DNA of 63,934 bases, counting the filler, from Octopus bimaculoides (Eukaryota): the NCBI RefSeq assembly GCF_001194135.2. It is 7 parts of 7 records of this genome, joined end to end, with 100 filler letters (N's around TTAATTAATTAA, not from the genome) between each part and the next. Parts side by side here need not be neighbours in the genome. Positions count along the whole stretch, not along the records: positions 45,007 to 52,323 come from NC_068981.1; 6 more parts are not named here. The stretch is one strand, 5' to 3'. The translations under genes and the position numbers were made by a program. Under the pieces are notes generated by a model. That model saw only the letters and a program-made list of their open reading frames with translations, did no database searches and was not told where the DNA came from. This document shows positions 3,118-52,323 of the stretch, piece after piece (the first letter of the stretch is position 1; each line of letters opens with the position of its first letter).

Positions 3118-4084
3118 GAAAAGCAGAAGGTTGCCCAAGTGTCTTCTCACTCAATATTCACGTGCTATTATAAATTAGATGTATGTGAGTGCTTCGAGAT
3201 ATTCCAAGAAAGAATTATTTCTCGTTCTCTCGAAAATTTTAAAATTCTTATGACGTCAACAATATACATACATACATGTATATGTGTGAGTGCGTGTGTG
3301 TGTATGTGTGTTTGTACATACACGCATACATACATACATAGATACATACATACATACATATATACATACGTACATAAGCAAATACATTATAATTTTAATG
3401 TGCAGACAGCTGGATAGGTGGGTTCCTGGCTGGTTAGACGTTTTACCAGTTCTCTAGATCGATTAACAAAGTAAAAAAATTCAAGAAATAATGTCAAATA
3501 ATATTTTGAGATCGTGTGCAAACATATTGAACGATAGACATGTAAACAAAGAAAAGAGTTATTACACCTATCTTACAAACTAATATTATTTACATAGAAT
3601 CTCTCAGCTATAATCTTCCAATTAAATTAATGCCTCATGGGAGATCTTGTCTTCCCTGTATTAAGTAGATGGCAAATATGTTTTTGTCTAAGAAGAATCA
3701 TTTAAAATATGAGACATAGTAAATTTTGGGTAATGGTTAAATCATAAATTTGTAGTAAATATATTTGCTGACCGATTCTTATATTTTTTGGCGAATTTTG
3801 TTATTATGAGGTTAGGTGTAATTGTCTCCGTTTATAAGTCGAAATCCCATAATTTTCTCGCTGAGCTTATAAATTTCAGTGTTTAAAATCAAAATTTCAT
3901 GATCTGACCATCACTCACATCAGTTTGGAAAATATTTTATGTAATAAATAAGTCAAGTAAAAATGGCTTATAGTCTGAAATCTTACAGAGAGTAAATTGT
4001 AAGCGTTAAGCAAAACCAAATGTTTCAAATGTGTTTCGAGCTGAAACGAGGCTCAAACTTGCACGAAATAATAAAAAAGATATC

Positions 4085-45006: not shown

Positions 45007-45063
<57 letters not shown>

Positions 45064-46289
45064 CATATATATATACATTTTATATATATATATATATACC
45101 ATATATATATATATACACATTATATATATATATTTGCAAATATATTTGCATGCAAAACCAATTACATAAAAATTTGGAGTTATATAGTTTAACGAAAGAA
45201 CTGAATATCCGGCCACCTGGAGGCGTCGGGTACCTTGACCAGTGGGTGTATGTATGTACGTATGTACGTATGTATGTATGTATGTATGTATGTATGTATG
45301 TATGTGTGTGTGTATGTGTTGTGTTATTGCATGTGTTTAAGCATATATATATTTAAATATTTGTGTGTATACATATATACATATATACACAGAGACAAAT
45401 ATACACAGATACATATTTTTAAAATAGTGTTATAGCTTAAAGTATGTGGATTATGTCTATATATATTTATATGTGTACGTGTCTACATACATACATCCAT
45501 GCATACATATAAGCACACATACATACATACATACATACATACATACATACATACATACATGATTCACATTCTTGAAACTACAAATATTTTTAAAATCGTC
45601 ACTTAATTTTCCATTTCTGACATATAAACCAAAGAATTTAAACCGTACTATATTCCTCATGTTTAGTTCCAATTAATTTTAATGTGTCCTGACATGTCTG
45701 AAGACATTGTACTCAACTAACTTTCATTTGAGAATAGTCAAATTTTATACTTTTTTTAAGAAAAAAAAATATGAGTCTTAATTTTCCTTAATTTACTGTA
45801 TGATCAACGCAGTTAAAATGAGAGAATTTATAAACCGCCCAATTAGGCATTTCTAAATTAACTTCAATATAGAATTTCTGAAGAATTCAATATAGAATTC
45901 CTGAAGAAAATTTATCCATTCTTGTAATAGTTTACTGGCTTCAGTTATTGGACAGAAGCCATGGTGGGGAACGGCTTTCGATTGTAAGAGCCTGAATTCT
46001 ATGTATTTGTTTAGTTTTCAAAATCAAGATTGGCAAAGGAGTAATGGTTATGTCAAAGCTGACGGGGAGTTAAAGAAAGTTCGATGGATATACCACAAAA
46101 TCATTTCCCTTCCATGGATGAATTTTACTGTCTCCTTCCTCCTCCCCCACATACATACATACGTACGTACGTACGTACATACATTATACAAACAGGCACA
46201 CACACACACATATGTATACGCAAATATATATTATATGAATATACCGTGTATAATACATTGTATATGTCTGTATATTATAGGCAAATATC

Positions 46290-46345
<56 letters not shown>

Positions 46346-46569
46346 GTCTGTCTGTCTGTCTGTCTATGTATCTGTTTGTCTGTCTGTCTGTTTGTCTGTT
46401 ATCTTCTCTCTGTATATATACATATGGTCACATGTTTATATATGTGTGTGTGTTGATGTGTGTATGTGGTTGTGTATGTGTATTTGAGTATATATGTATA
46501 TATGTCTCATTAAGGATCTGTGAACTACTATAAAGGCACGCATCATATCAACACGATCCAGCCACACAC

Positions 46570-46799
46570 AGTTCGACTGCAGCCATGCTGGAGCACCAAC
46601 TTTAGTCGATCAAATCGACATTAAGACTTATTTTTTGTAAACCTATGAAGTTCTATCAGGGTTCTTTTGCCGAACCGCTAAGTTACGGGGAGGTAAACAC
46701 ACCAACATTGGTTGTCAAGCGATGGTGTAGGGACAAACACAGACACACAAACATATACATATGTATGCATACATACATACATACACACACAAATATATA

Positions 46800-46835
<36 letters not shown>

Positions 46836-47364
46836 NNNNNNNNNNNNNNNNNNNNNNNNNNNNNNNNNNNNNNNNNNNNNNNNNNNNNNNNNNNNNNNNN
46901 NNNNNNNNNNNNNNNNNNNNNNNNNNNNNNNNNNNNNNNNNNNNNNNNNNNNNNNNNNNNNNNNNNNNNNNNNNNNNNNNNNNNNNNNNNNNNNNNNNNN
47001 NNNNNNNNNNNNNNNNNNNNNNNNNNNNNNNNNNNNNNNNNNNNNNNNNNNNNNNNNNNNNNNNNNNNNNNNNNNNNNNNNNNNNNNNNNNNNNNNNNNN
47101 NNNNNNNNNNNNNNNNNNNNNNNNNNNNNNNNNNNNNNNNNNNNNNNNNNNNNNNNNNNNNNNNNNNNNNNNNNNNNNNNNATATATATATATACACATA
47201 TATACGACGGGCGTCTTTCGGTTTCCGTCTACCAAATCCGCTCACAAGACTTTGGTCAGCCCGAAGCTATAGAAGAAGACAGTTGCCTAAGGTGCCACGC
47301 AGTGGAACTGAACCCGGGCCCATGTGGTTGGTAAGAAAGCTACTTACCACATAGCCATTTCTGC
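46570..47364 (-). mobile_element. SINE family B with expanded internal microsatellite (gap inside)
   Basis: Both halves match family B in reverse. Confidence 0.9.
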
Positions 47365-47394
47365 ACACACACACACATACATATGATGTATGTA

Positions 47395-47670
47395 GGCATC
47401 GTAAGATGGTTTAGAATTTAGGTTTACTATCATGAAGTTCAAGGTTCAATCTCCTTGCATAGAAGTGTCTCTTGTCATTACTTCGAGTTGACTAAAGCAT
47501 TGTAAGTGAATTTGGGTTGGAAAAATCTACCTGCAATTCAAAGGGCCAATATTGCCACGCTCATAGTCATAGTTAATCACTACAATATGAGTGTACATGT
47601 CTTTGAAACGCTCATCTGTTTATGTGCTATTTCAAAGCGTACACCGTTCCATTGATCGAACAACCAACAG
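47395..47670 (+). mobile_element. Decayed composite SINE: family B head plus family D tail
   Basis: GGTTCAATC..GACTAAAGCATTGTAAGTGAATTTGG joined to CCTGCAATTCAAAGGGCC..GTTCCATTGATCGAACAACC. Confidence 0.5.
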
Positions 47671-48323
47671 AGATTTGTGTATGTTCTCCTGTATCTTTAA
47701 ATATCTGAAGTCTTCCTATAAGGAAATAGGCTGGTTTCTAACAAAGTACAAGTCTTTGTCGTTCGAATGTAAACAAAAACAGCATCATATTTTAAACTCG
47801 AGAAAAGTCTTGAATGTTTTTATTGTTCCATTTTCAGATTATCTATGTAATGTGTAAGTTAATTAGTTGCTTTCCTTTTCTGAAAACCCCAGCCTTTGCA
47901 GATTGTCACAAAGACATTTACTAACAAAACAAAGTTCACCAATTATTATTGGTATTAATGTGAATTTGGATACAAAAGTTGGAGGCTTTCTCCAGAATTT
48001 TCGAAGAGATATTCACGTCAGCAGGGCAGCTGATCTCTATGACAGTACATACTTTTTCTTGTGAATCTCAAACGACGGTATCTAGTCTATTGTGTCTGCA
48101 CTTTGTTGAAACTTTGTTAGGAATCTTCCACCTATAACTGTTGTGTTGATGCTTATGTATGTATTTGGTTATGGGGGTATTATCTATGTTTATCCCCAAA
48201 CAATCTTTTGCCTCTTTCGAATAACATTGTTTTAGCGACAACGTCATGTCGCAGTATCTTGATGACATTTTTGGGCTTTCGCTGGTCACATGAGTGATGT
48301 CTTCTACAGAAATGTGACGACTA

Positions 48324-48507
48324 GGCGCAGGAGTGGCTGTGTGGTAAATAGCTTGCTTACTAACCGCATGGTTCCGGTTCAGTCCTACTGCATGGTACCT
48401 TGGGCAAGTGTCTACCATAGCTTCGTGCCGACCAAAGCCTTGTGAGTGGATTTGGTAGACGGAAACCGAAAGAAGCCCGTCGTATATATATGTGTATGTG
48501 TGTGTGT

Positions 48508-48549
<42 letters not shown>

Positions 48550-48568
48550 ATGTGTGTGTGTGTGTGCA

Positions 48569-48602
<34 letters not shown>

Positions 48603-48808
48603 TGTGTATCCGTGTTTGTCCACCCGCCATCGCTTGGCAACCGATGTTGGTGTGTTTACGTCCCCGTAATCTGGCAATTCGGCAAAATAGACCGATAAAA
48701 TAAGTACTAGGCTAACAAAAAAAACTGAAGTCCTGGGATCGATTTGTTCCACTAAAGGCGGTGCTCCAGCATGGCCGCAGTCAAATGACTGAAATAAATA
48801 AAAGAATA
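48324..48808 (+). mobile_element. Full-length SINE family B with internal (TG)n
   Basis: GGCGCAGGAGTGGCTGTGTGGTAA box A, GGTTCAGTCC box B, CORE-like ACCTTGGGCAAGTG, microsatellite 48485-48608, tail CAAATGACTGAAATAAATAAAAGA. Confidence 0.93.
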
Positions 48809-49039
48809 ATCGGCATTTCAGTGGCATCGTGTAGCTCCAAGGACCAACCTGTTACTTGTTCGTTAAGTATTATATGCAAACGTAAATCCGTCACTCGCAA
48901 GTGAGTATAATTTGCTAGCTTGTGCGACGCTTTCGTTAATTGTTTTTATTGCCTGCGTAGTCAGGAGCAGACATAGACACCCTCTTCGTCCTCCAAACCG
49001 TCACCCATCGGATCATGGAAGGCGTAGCAGCACGATGAA

Positions 49040-49210
49040 AGACAAAAAGCTTCATCAGCGGTCGATTGGTACTCATCACGGCTAAGAAGACTAAAGTAAC
49101 GCGAAGTGATGTTTTGTTCAAGGACACACAGAAACCATTGATCTAGGAATCGAATCGTTGAACTTATGAGTTCGAGCTCATCATTTTAATTGTTACGTCA
49201 CGTGGCTTTG
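49040..49210 (-). mobile_element. Decayed SINE family C-like
   Basis: Minus strand GATTCGATTCCTAG then GTGTCCTTGAACAAAACATCAC. Confidence 0.5.
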
Positions 49211-49349
49211 ACTTATGTACACACACGTGTTTATACATACACTCATATTTGTGTGTCTTTGCACGTTTTGTAAGTATATACGTATGTATGTATTTAGGTA
49301 TGTATGTATGTATGTATGTCTGTATGTATGTGTGTATGTATGTATGTCA

Positions 49350-50250
49350 AATTTGTAAGTGCTACTGGTAACATGTGACCCAGTACAATTTTTGTCATAT
49401 AGTTGCATGTATAGGCATGCCTTTATATACTTAAATAATAAACTTCTGGAAAAATTTACAGTTTCACAGTTCCACTGATAACTTGGATCTACTGTCTTCG
49501 AATCAGCTTTCTCCTTTCTGGTTTTGAGAAGCTTAATTTCTGAAGATGGGTACTTAGACAGTGTGTTACATATTCCAGTACCCCAATAATTACAGGTATA
49601 AATCTGAACTTGTAATCTGGGTTGAATAAGTGTAGATTTCTTAATAGTTCAGCGTAGGTGTCTTTTCTTTTTCACTGATCTTTAGCTTTATGTAGATCTT
49701 ATCAACGTCACTTTCTACGGAAGTTCCCAGTTGTTGTCAGGATTTTGCGGGTTTTGATGTCTGTGGAGTGGATTTCCTCTACAAACCAATTACGTAACCC
49801 ACATATTGGGATCAGCACTGGCACTACAAATGCATTCTGGGATATGGTTTTGTTGTACGAGGAGAGTTCCGACTGCCATATTTTCCTAAGTCTGGTGTAA
49901 TATTCTCGGGTCACTCTATCTTTATTCACAGTGCCTTCATATGATATATTTTCGTCTATGCCTAGGTACTTGTAACATTCTTTGTGTGGAATAGGGGAGA
50001 CAGAGAGACCGTTGATGCACAGGTTAGGGGTTTGGGGACTGACTCACCTCGTTCTATAAGCAAATATGAACATTTCTTTTGGCTAAATTCCATGCCTATA
50101 TCAGCTGAAAATGTTGTTATTAATTCCAGTTGTTTCTTTTTTTTACATTGTTAACACCTTTAGCATAAACCTTCAGGTCGTCTACAAAGAAATTACGAGT
50201 TACATTGATATTTCTGGCAGTTGAAGATCCTAGCATGTAACCATTTGTTT
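49350..50250 (-). pseudogene. R4/Dong-like element (family 3): RT C-half fused by deletion to the RLE end; (CATA)n on both sides
   Basis: FFVDDLKVYA, YKYLGIDEN, EYYTRLRKIWQSELSSYNK, DIKTRKIL, SDVDKIY joined near 49690 to YAELLRNL..FRFIPVIIG..FSKPERRKLIRR. Confidence 0.9.
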
Positions 50251-50490
50251 TCTGCTGTATGTATGTATGTATGTATGTATGTATGTATGTGTGTGTATGT
50301 GTGTATGCATGCATGTATGTAAGTATGTATGTATGTATATATGTATGTGTATGTGTGTATGTGTGTATGTGTGTGCGTGTGTGTATGTATGTATGTATGT
50401 ATGTATGTATGTATGTGTGTGTGTGTGCGTGTGTGCGTGCGTGTATTATGTATGTATGTATGCATGCATATATATTTATATATATATGTA

Positions 50491-50880
50491 TATAAATACA
50501 GTGTACATTTAAACATCTAAGAGGTATCTATCATAGGATTCCTTGCACGCTAGAAAGAACCATTATTAGGGATAAAACTTCGAAGGGAAGCTTAATTTAG
50601 GTGTACCTGCTGAAGAAGACTTCGCTTGGCAAATTATTCTATTTGCTAAAATAATTCAGAAACCATTGGTTCAGGAGCTAGATGGTAAATGTTTTCATTT
50701 TTCATTCCCTAATAATGGTTTGGAACTTAGCTGTTCTTTCTATCGTGCAAGGAATCCTATGATGGATACCTCTTATGTGTTTAAATCTAAACTGTATTAA
50801 TATGAATAATATATAGTCTATGGACTAAATTTTTACATGCTAGGCCACTGGTAGAAGAAATTTCTAATATTTCTCATCAC
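50491..50880. mobile_element. Third copy of the foldback family
   Basis: Imperfect arms of about 80 bp, 50491-50572 / 50706-50798; right flank matches 13118-13200. Confidence 0.75.
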
Positions 50881-50893
50881 CCTTGATATTATT

Positions 50894-50928
<35 letters not shown>

Positions 50929-51032
50929 NNNNNNNNNNNNNNNNNNNNNNNNNNNNNNNNNNNNNNNNNNNNNNNNNNNNNNNNNNNNNNNNNNNNNNNN
51001 NNNNNNNNNNNNNNNNNNNNNNNNNNNNNNNA

Positions 51033-51134
51033 TATTGTCCATGTTTTTTTGCAACGTCATGTATCCAGATATGCATCTATATATACATGTAGATGAAGGT
51101 ATGTACATACATGTACATATATATGCATATACTC

Positions 51135-51145
<11 letters not shown>
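51033..51145 (+). repeat. Dispersed repeat, inverted homologue at 54135-54255
   Basis: CCAGATATGCATCTATATATACATGTAGATG..GCATATACTCA shared in reverse complement. Confidence 0.8.
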
Positions 51146-51180
<35 letters not shown>

Positions 51181-51879
51181 TGTATCCGATGGACTTCTGC
51201 AACATTTACAGTTGCCCAATATCACGAAAGAGGCTATGGCAGAAAACATTCGCTTAATCTTTTACGCACAGTGTTCGGAGCCAAACGTTTTTGGAAAGAA
51301 TATTCTCCTCGTCATTTCCCGTTTCATATGAATTTTAAAGCAATTTACTTTAAATAAAACTTTTTAATTTATAACAACATGATTTATTATTTCAGCTGGT
51401 GACTTTTAAGCTTTTATTCTTTAACTGATTGCAGTCATAAACAACTTGTGTCTCATGTAATTCACTTGACACTATAGTCTTTGGTTAATTGGTGGATTTC
51501 TAAATGAAAACAAAAACAAGATTTCTTTACTGAGAAGAGACAGAGAGAGGGAGAAGGGGAACGAATTGAAAAAGAGAGACGGAGAGGGAGAAAATGAAAA
51601 AGAAGAGAAAGGGAAGAAAGAGGAAGAAAACACATTAATTCGTTGACTTTTTATTAGAAAATAGTTTAAGCTTCCTATAAAGAGATGTTATTATTTCTGA
51701 TGTGAAACTCGTAAAACGCTTCCTCTGTCACTTTATCCGCCGGCTTGACGCATTTCATTATTTAACCCCCTTACTGCCATGCAAAACTTTAGGCTGAGTG
51801 ATAGCTTAATAGCTTATGTGTGTTATTTTATACACGCATAGATTCATATCAATATACACACATCCAAACATACTTACAC

Positions 51880-51919
<40 letters not shown>

Positions 51920-52009
51920 CCATTACTCTATTATTCTATTATCAGTTTCAGCCAAAGGCTGTGGCCATTCTGCAGCACCGCAATTAGCGTTAATGCTTGC
52001 TTATTTGAG

Positions 52010-52260
52010 ACTCTTTTCCCGGTTCTACCTCTGGAATCGGTTCTGGTGAAGTAGTAATTTTTACGAAGCTGCTTGTCTTTGCGTTTCTTGCTGTTATCTA
52101 GATTATTCTGATATATCAGATCAAAATTTGTCCACTCGTTCTTTGAACACATCTACATCTACTCCTCGTAGATCTCTGAGACCTTTCGGCAAGGTATTGA
52201 ACAGTTGCGATTCTTTGAACCCTAAACTGTTACAGTAGTGGGTCCTTACTTTGGATCTTG
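52010..52260 (-). pseudogene. 3' end of the same CR1/L2-group LINE as 20930
   Basis: VRTHYCNSLGFKESQLFNTLPKGLRDLRGVDVDVFKERVDKF*. Confidence 0.8.
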
Positions 52261-52278
52261 TATACATTTACACCCAAC

Positions 52279-52323
<45 letters not shown>

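Follow-up and report, generated by a model that had tools for sequence, protein, structure and literature searches.

Target-primed reverse transcription has its model in site-specific retrotransposons that carry a restriction-like endonuclease (RLE), R2 for example, and these elements are now under engineering as vehicles for gene insertion. How RLE proteins choose their DNA site, and how this choice evolves, are questions for which the lineage described here, a clade of elements flanked by tetranucleotide repeats, offers a natural series. Microsatellite targets have been reported for several retrotransposons: Dong targets (TAA)n, Waldo (ACAY)n, Mino (AC)n, Kibi (TC)n, Koshi (TTC)n and Togen (TG)n, and some HERO families are microsatellite-specific as well (PMC3812793; PMC4640811). 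Flanking (TAA)n is the defining arrangement of Dong (PMC3812793; PMC7998251). Dong-R4 elements are among the most active long interspersed nuclear elements (LINEs) reported from Octopus vulgaris, with 5 families and 1129 recent insertions (PMC13282606), and the papers on cephalopod repeats describe them as abundant and active without discussing their targets (PMC13282606; PMC8967140); one survey discards simple repeats, which would hide any association between element and microsatellite (PMC8967140). This article describes a Dong-like element found in a stretch of 63,934 nucleotides from Octopus bimaculoides (the window, filler included; assembly GCF_001194135.2), taking as the analysed piece positions 45007-52323, which come from NC_068981.1.

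The feature is very probably a dead copy of a Dong-like RLE retrotransposon of the non-LTR type (without long terminal repeats), belonging to a sister clade of the (TAA)n Dong elements that inserts in one orientation only into tetranucleotide microsatellites, either (CATA)n or (ACTT)n. (CATA)n is the repeat of several families, that of the window copy included, and (ACTT)n is the repeat of others. In the window, a degenerate fragment of 0.9 kb occupies the minus strand at 49348-50255 and lies, in the sense direction, between two (CATA)n arrays; the preliminary description of this DNA, which had placed a minus-strand copy with (CATA)n on both sides at 49350-50250, was correct in this respect for that copy, the one of its two that lies within the piece. 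Tandem Repeats Finder (TRF) reports the arrays as plus-strand (TGTA)n of period 4 at 49269-49347 and 50256-50491, equivalent to (TACA/CATA)n in the sense direction, and both directly abut the element. In the sense direction the sequence across the 5' truncation point is ...CATACATACA/GCAGAAAAC (the slash marks the junction) and that across the 3' junction ...AAATTTG/ACATACATACAT, with the element ending in ...ACAAATTTG and in the same register as five other CATA-type copies. Arrays of the correct orientation make up about 1.3% of the non-N bases elsewhere in the piece (71 of ~5,650), and the probability that both ends of the element abut such arrays by chance is about 1e-4 to 2e-4; a chance placement between two (CATA)n arrays is unlikely. 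The piece is AT-rich and dense in microsatellites, and the genome in general is rich in tetranucleotide repeats. Arrays of the types (TGTA)n, (TACA)n, (ACAT/ACGT)n and (TATC/TGTC)n occur at 45247-45317, 45484-45560, 46149-46184 and 46286-46399, with no recognisable element fragment adjoining them.

The reverse transcriptase (RT) peptides of the window copy are spread over three frames of the minus strand (..NFFVDDLKVYAKG.., LELITTFSADIGMEFSQKKCSYLLIERG and ..YKYLGIDENISY..DIKTRKILTTTGNF.. in the translation of 49348-50255); another excerpt of the same translation is ..GYMLGSSTARNINVTRNFFVDDLKVYAKG.., ..LELITTFSADIGMEFSQKKCSYLLIERG.. and ..CYKYLGIDENISYEGTVNKDRVTREYYTRLRKIWQSELSSYNKTISQNAF..DIKTRKILTTTGNF..SDVDKIYIKLK. 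The tblastn segments 50266-50135, 50129-50037 and 50034-49714 correspond, in three different frames and at 43-65% identity, to residues 615-797 of an intact relative; SDVDKIYIKLK follows them in yet another frame, and the C-terminal peptide KRKDTYAELLRNLHLFNPDYKFRFIPVIIGVLEYV...SGTVKL comes after the RT. When stitched together, the window peptide retrieved 85 protein matches in the homologue search (best E = 5.6e-63, 50-64% identity); the Pfam RVT_1 match by itself is weak and under the cut-off (E = 2.9e-4). Measured against a near-intact relative of 1163 amino acids, the copy covers residues ~622-810 and 1084-1154. The deletion between these segments takes out the linker, the CCHC knuckle and the RLE catalytic core, a stretch present in all intact relatives, and the residues encoded at 49459-49671 align with the invariant K1070/Y1074/L1077 columns of the relatives' alignment. 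The copy is dead, being 5'-truncated, shifted in frame at least three times, interrupted by one in-frame stop and internally deleted. Identity to the nearest relatives, among them both an ACTT family and a CATA family, is only about 55%.

The intact relatives have one open reading frame (ORF) of 1130-1160 amino acids, in which an N-terminal motif, a helical linker, the RT, a CCHC knuckle and an RLE signature follow each other in this order, and Pfam recognises RVT_1 in them at E ~1e-26. Invariant in 16 relatives are the CCHC residues (C959, C962, H971, C976), R988-H989 of an RH(D/N) motif, P-D1039 of a (K/R)PD motif, an acidic D/E column and K1070..Y1074; RH(D/N), (K/R)PD, the acidic column and K..Y together make up the signature of a PD-(D/E)xK restriction-like endonuclease. 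The earlier assignment of this lineage to the RLE elements is upheld by these motifs of the relatives; it cannot be read from the window copy itself, and it rests on the relatives because the window copy has lost the RLE catalytic core. A domain of the apurinic/apyrimidinic endonuclease (APE) type (Exo_endo_phos) was absent from the three intact proteins submitted to Pfam, which returned RVT_1 and weak zf-RVT only.

Several comparisons place the protein near R2. The best PDB sequence matches of the relatives are R2 proteins (E = 2e-25), with an alignment that continues through the CCHC knuckle. An AlphaFold model of one intact protein (P0086) has a mean predicted local distance difference test (pLDDT) score of 73.6, rising to 85-92 in the RLE region, and its seven best Foldseek matches are R2 structures (E = 7e-25 to 8e-19), ranked above LINE-1 ORF2p; the predicted fold of the intact relatives is R2-like. 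At the N-terminus the relatives share a conserved, zinc-free motif, WTxELNxD..CY...GYMKRxK..WD..HP, within a domain that AlphaFold predicts to be a three-helix bundle (pLDDT about 90). A Myb/SANT-like assignment has been proposed for R4/Dong N-termini (PMC7998251); this domain gave no Foldseek match below E = 1 against the PDB and no Pfam Myb match.

DNA of the relatives was drawn from twelve loci of ENA, JGI or NCBI assemblies and from 80 further metagenome-contig loci, with Argonauta hians and Tara Oceans among the sources, and about 15 loci were examined for tetranucleotide junctions; in the three homologue searches the only matches that bore a name were a hypothetical protein of Argonauta hians and, under uninformative names, two entries from insects. 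Whether the copy is full-length, near-full-length or 5'-truncated, the tetranucleotide of its family, always in the sense orientation, was found at every readable junction (13/13 at the 5' and 11/11 at the 3' end). In the 64 kb of surrounding DNA, perfect arrays of at least 4 units cover 0.09% for CATA in the sense and 0.06% in the antisense direction, and 0% for ACTT. The presence of the repeat at the 5' junctions, on which the preliminary description had staked its proposal, was thus borne out in all thirteen cases against a background of at most 0.1%.

These counts bear directly on the reading in which the repeat is only a tail templated at the 3' end, a microsatellite tail of the sort that many LINEs have, insertion occurs more or less anywhere, and the upstream array of the window copy is a coincidence of a CATA-rich genome. 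The piece is indeed rich in the repeat, in both orientations (45247-45317, 45484-45560, 46149-46184, 46768-46790), and in a second Dong-like fragment within it (48310-47788) the putative 3' end bears no more than a short ACATACAT, and CATA is missing from the 5' end. Against this, the 13 readable 5' junctions abut sense arrays of the family repeat as long as 270 bp where background coverage by such arrays is at most 0.1%, and they include three 5'-truncated copies (the window copy, L002 and L008). These weigh most, as their upstream repeat cannot derive from a co-transcribed array, so that the tail-only explanation fails for them. It is already largely refuted and we consider it quite improbable. 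Targeting of arrays and templating of a tail are not mutually exclusive.

Insertion into an array is also indicated by the constancy of the junctions. At the 3' end the six CATA-type copies all share the register /ACAT, and of the five ACTT-type copies four have /CTTA; the 5' junctions mostly end in ...ACA/ (window copy, L007, L008 and L009) or ...A/ (L004 and L006). L004 and L008 are 90-94% identical and their flanks have no similarity, so these two members of one family represent independent insertions. In four loci (L001, L004, L005 and L008) long HiFi contigs span both arrays together with unique flanks.

In a neighbor-joining (NJ) tree built on p-distances over 966 columns, in which two APE-type LINEs served as the outgroup, the families with a tetranucleotide or (CA)n repeat all group together (bootstrap 100%), and their sister is a (TAA)n-flanked clade (92.5%). 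Within the tetranucleotide clade, L015 and L016 (both ACTT) branch first, followed by a mostly CATA group C (98.5%) and then by groups A and B (99.5%), in which ACTT and CATA families are intermixed and to which the window copy belongs. Identity is about 47% within the tetranucleotide clade and about 31% to the (TAA)n clade. The metagenome scan revealed a second tier of full-length, collinear relatives at ~30% identity, which a third homologue search, made with a profile, also reached, with no named Dong among its matches. In every second-tier case examined (L018-L029, L039, L056, L084 and L090) the 3' UTR (untranslated region) is followed by (TAA)n, which in L025, L028, L052 and L056 is present upstream too. 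The RT and RLE sequences thus fall beside (TAA)n-flanked elements of the Dong type, and because the tetranucleotide clade is sister to these, a change of target, as supposed in the preliminary description, is a fitting account. Membership of the tetranucleotide families in the R4 clade is suggested by their architecture and by this sister relation. Insertion into (TAA)n, which defines Dong sensu stricto, is not what they display: the flanks are CATA in the window copy, L004 and L006-L009, and ACTT in L001-L003, L005 and L013-L016.

Monophyly of the CATA families was considered and rejected, as CATA occurs in groups A, B and C, and ACTT both at the base (L015/L016) and inside group A. The scattered distribution of CATA and CTTA, which differ by one base, implies either that the target switched repeatedly or that its ancestral state is uncertain. 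Since related proteins that are 45-55% identical have targets one base (CATA and CTTA) or one unit length (TAA and CATA) apart, the determinants that read the target should be mappable by comparison and domain swaps. In some Dong relatives a tRNA-like module directly follows the 5' (TAA)n array (L021, 84-168; L025, ~107-180; L028, ~25-100), called as tRNA-Gly(ccc) by ARAGORN in L021 and resembling an A box and B box by eye in L025 and L028, for which Rfam returned nothing at E <= 0.01. In the tetranucleotide clade no module of this kind was called; in the (TAA)n relatives it may serve 5' processing or as a promoter. A lepidopteran relative (L012, Parnassius mnemosyne) is an old, degenerate copy with A/T-rich flanks and no clean (TAA)n.

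Passive accumulation has been suggested for Waldo-A and Waldo-B, which lie near CA repeats in Drosophila (PMC3812793). Applied here, arrays would be gene-poor refuges, or else points where assemblies break, at which transposons of any kind collect, and several contigs do terminate within arrays (L009, L013-L016). The tree speaks against this, as the repeat unit follows phylogeny, each of (TAA)n, (CATA)n and (ACTT)n being limited to particular clades or families. So do the fixed orientation and register and the HiFi contigs that run through both arrays into unique sequence, and other transposon fragments at the same loci have no such flanks. Explanations of this kind appear barely credible.

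Insertion into tetranucleotide arrays is best explained by target-primed reverse transcription specific for both sequence and orientation, as in Dong and R2 but with another repeat unit, and could proceed as follows. The single protein of the element would recognise the repeat and its RLE would nick the bottom strand at a fixed register; the freed ...ATGT-3' end would prime reverse transcription of the element RNA by the target-primed route, and the cDNA would be joined upstream, inside the same array. Joining within one array would leave the repeat on both sides even after an early stop of the RT, and the unvarying /ACAT register points to a nick of the bottom strand with ...ATGT-3' left as the primer. 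More speculatively, the endings of the 5' junctions are compatible with a second nick about one base away. We infer the cleavage positions, the priming by the repeat and the identity of the domain that reads it.

A structure of the element RNA that may take part in this process was found 25-65 nucleotides from the 3' end of seven relatives (L001, L003, L004, L005, L006, L007 and L008), which share one fold: a lower stem, a UU bulge, an upper stem of 5-7 bp, a loop of 5 nucleotides (mostly UUGUU) and a single-base 3' bulge. The hairpin is present in L013 and L016 too, and a comparable one in the (TAA)n elements L025 and L056, so that it is common to CATA, ACTT and some TAA families. Over the five innermost pairs in 11 families, 55 of 55 cells pair, both sides vary at all 5 pairs, and double changes number 25 compared with 6.1 expected from shuffling. 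The cores compared were equal-length stem-loops picked by eye, a MAFFT alignment having lost the structural register. By analogy with the 3' UTR of R2, the hairpin is a likely binding site for the element protein. In the window copy it has decayed and is not recognisable (z = -0.84). No Rfam family fits the hairpin, and a search of 10 loci at gathering score found no R2 3' element, hepatitis delta virus (HDV)-like ribozyme or other family, the sole match being a tRNA in the flank of L005; sub-threshold matches of the mir-297/466 type on the TG/TGTA repeats of the window were dismissed as chance. At full-length 5' ends (L003, L006, L009, L013 and L014) a short hairpin followed by a GGACG-like box was noted by eye (CTTCCGCAATGGAAGGACG in L009, CGTCGTCGCAGACGGACG in L013), and could be a candidate 5' RNA or promoter element.

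Some flanks are mixed. L007 has (CATA)n(CTTA)n(CATA)n at 3373-3558, L084 has (ATA)n followed by (CATA)n at 2742-2810, and L063 has (ACA)n(GCA)n(TAT)n at 3284-3469; together with the (CA)n that forms the 3' flank of L010, they suggest either further target types or arrays grown by successive insertions. The elements might accordingly have made the arrays, by tail-only insertions, template jumps to the tail of a second RNA or slippage during priming, instead of finding them as a target. The 5' mosaic of L007 and the compound array of L084 do resemble successive additions by different families, and the arrays that flank elements are long and pure. Array-making by itself leaves the fixed 3' register unexplained, and also the use of one repeat unit per family unless the endonuclease recognises the unit as well, and it is best taken as something that can go together with targeting, not as its rival. 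As a replacement for a pre-existing target we regard it as unlikely; as an addition, the mosaic array of L007 hints that elements may also lengthen or seed arrays.

Some points weigh against insertion into pre-existing arrays by a sister clade of Dong. That the arrays were there before the elements is something we infer, and the junctions come from a small sample of loci. Two of the 3' arrays are very short (ACATACAT in L007, ACAT(AC)n in L006), and the family of the window copy, given its ~55% identity to the nearest relatives, is represented by a single copy in this sample. The tree is an NJ tree on p-distances built without named Dong, R4, HERO, NeSL or R2 references. Complete pairing of the hairpin is partly a product of selection by eye, and what is meaningful is how varied the pair types are where the position is conserved. 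The features of the window copy and the flanks of the relatives are collected in Table 1.

Table 1. Parts of the window copy (positions in the window) and repeats flanking its relatives
Feature or locus	Position	Strand	Description
Upstream (5') flanking microsatellite	50256..50491	minus	Sense (CATA)n, impure, with CACA/GCAC stretches; TRF period 4, plus-strand TGTA, 59 copies, 81% matches
5'-truncated RT segment, palm to thumb	49678..50255	minus	FFVDD box 50177-50191; at least 3 frameshifts; tblastn
Internal-deletion junction, approximate	49672..49677	minus	~273 codons (~0.8 kb) gone; residue ~810 of the relative adjoins residue 1084
End of RLE domain (K..Y motif, KRKDTY) and C-terminal helices	49459..49671	minus	One in-frame stop; 48% identity over 71 amino acids to L003 residues 1084-1154
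ORF-end remnant and short 3' UTR	49348..49458	minus	Element 3' end ...CACTTACAAATTTG; direct sequence reading
Downstream (3') flanking microsatellite	49269..49347	minus	Sense (ACAT)n; TRF period 4, 19.8 copies, 81% matches
L001			4.6 kb; flanks (ACTT)24 and (ACTT)16
L003			4.06 kb; flanks (TTAC)26 and (TTAC)35; ACTT family
L005			4.26 kb; flanks (CTTA)69 and (CTTA)13; ACTT family
L013			Full-length; (CTTA)n at both ends; ACTT family
L002			5'-truncated; ACTT repeat at 5' end; contig stops before 3' end
L014, L015			ACTT repeat at 5' end; 3' end beyond contig
L016			ACTT repeat at 3' end; 5' end beyond contig
L004			ERZ25878469; 3.8 kb; flanks (CATA)35 and (TACA)29
L008			ERZ25878469; L004 family, lacking the first 50 nucleotides; flanks (TACA)66 and (TACA)34
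L009			Tara Oceans contig; intact ORF of 1133 amino acids; (CATA)n at both contig ends
L006			Argonauta hians; upstream flank (ACAT)15, downstream flank ACAT(AC)n
L007			ERZ25072740; upstream flank a mosaic, (CATA)n(CTTA)n(CATA)n; downstream flank no more than ACATACAT

Other repeats surround the copy in the piece. The second Dong-like fragment, from another family, lies on the minus strand at 47788-48310 with a 3' UTR reaching to ~47395; truncated at its 5' end at the CCHC knuckle, it retains the RLE and the C-terminus (35-48% identity to the relatives' proteins P0087, P0088 and P0090). In the sense direction nothing but ACATACAT+CATA (47383-47394) comes after its putative 3' end, and its 5' end abuts a copy of a repeat resembling a short interspersed element (SINE), not CATA. 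This SINE-like repeat, which has an internal microsatellite, forms two nested inverted pairs that bracket the fragment (47190-47364 with 48327-48497, 84-90% identity; 46572-46791 with 48559-48785, 75%), and its segment 48427-48484 matches Argonauta hians L006 11441-11497 at 93% identity, in line with an octopod origin of the piece. Immediately next to the upstream (CATA)n of the window copy lies an inverted repeat of the foldback or miniature inverted-repeat transposable element (MITE) type (50485-50560 / 50733-50808), with arms of 76 nucleotides that are 88% complementary and a spacer of 172 nucleotides.

A wider reading goes further than the local one, and we put it forward tentatively, at slightly less than even odds. 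It holds that an undescribed sister clade of Dong is widely spread, in cephalopods and marine metagenomes, and reads repeats of 4 bp; that its target changed several times, one base at a step, between (CATA)n and (CTTA)n, with (CA)n offshoots; that the covarying hairpin of its 3' UTR is common to it and (TAA)n Dong; and that it perhaps seeds or extends the abundant (CATA)n arrays of octopods.

In the searchable literature, which does not take in Repbase, Dfam or the inventory of Fell et al. (2025), no description of an RLE element specific for (CATA)n or (ACTT)n was found. The preliminary description likewise knew of no tetranucleotide-specific RLE element; tetranucleotide targeting as such is already known from the APE-type Waldo. 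Elements of the latter (R1 clade; WaldoAg1/2, WaldoFs1) are specific for (ACAY)n, which includes (ACAT)n and so the (CATA)n of the present clade (PMC3812793). Waldo, however, has an N-terminal APE endonuclease and two ORFs, whereas the clade described here is without APE and has an R2-like predicted fold, and the target that they have in common is convergent. Like the present elements, Togen (NeSL clade, (TG)n) and those HERO families that are specific for microsatellites are of the RLE type (PMC4640811), but according to their descriptions they belong to other clades and use other repeat units. R2 provides the best PDB matches in sequence and structure, the same order of RT, CCHC knuckle and RLE and, presumably, the same logic of target-primed reverse transcription with a structured 3' UTR; it differs in its unique 28S site and in N-terminal zinc-finger and Myb modules, in place of which a zinc-free three-helix N-terminus is predicted here. 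The closest likeness is to Dong (Bombyx mori, Anopheles, Biomphalaria; R4 clade), which shares the single ORF with RT followed by CCHC knuckle and RLE, the absence of APE, a protein collinear over its full length, and orientation-specific insertion into a microsatellite with the repeat at both ends; the difference lies in the target, (TAA)n in Dong and the tetranucleotides (CATA)n or (ACTT)n in the elements described here.

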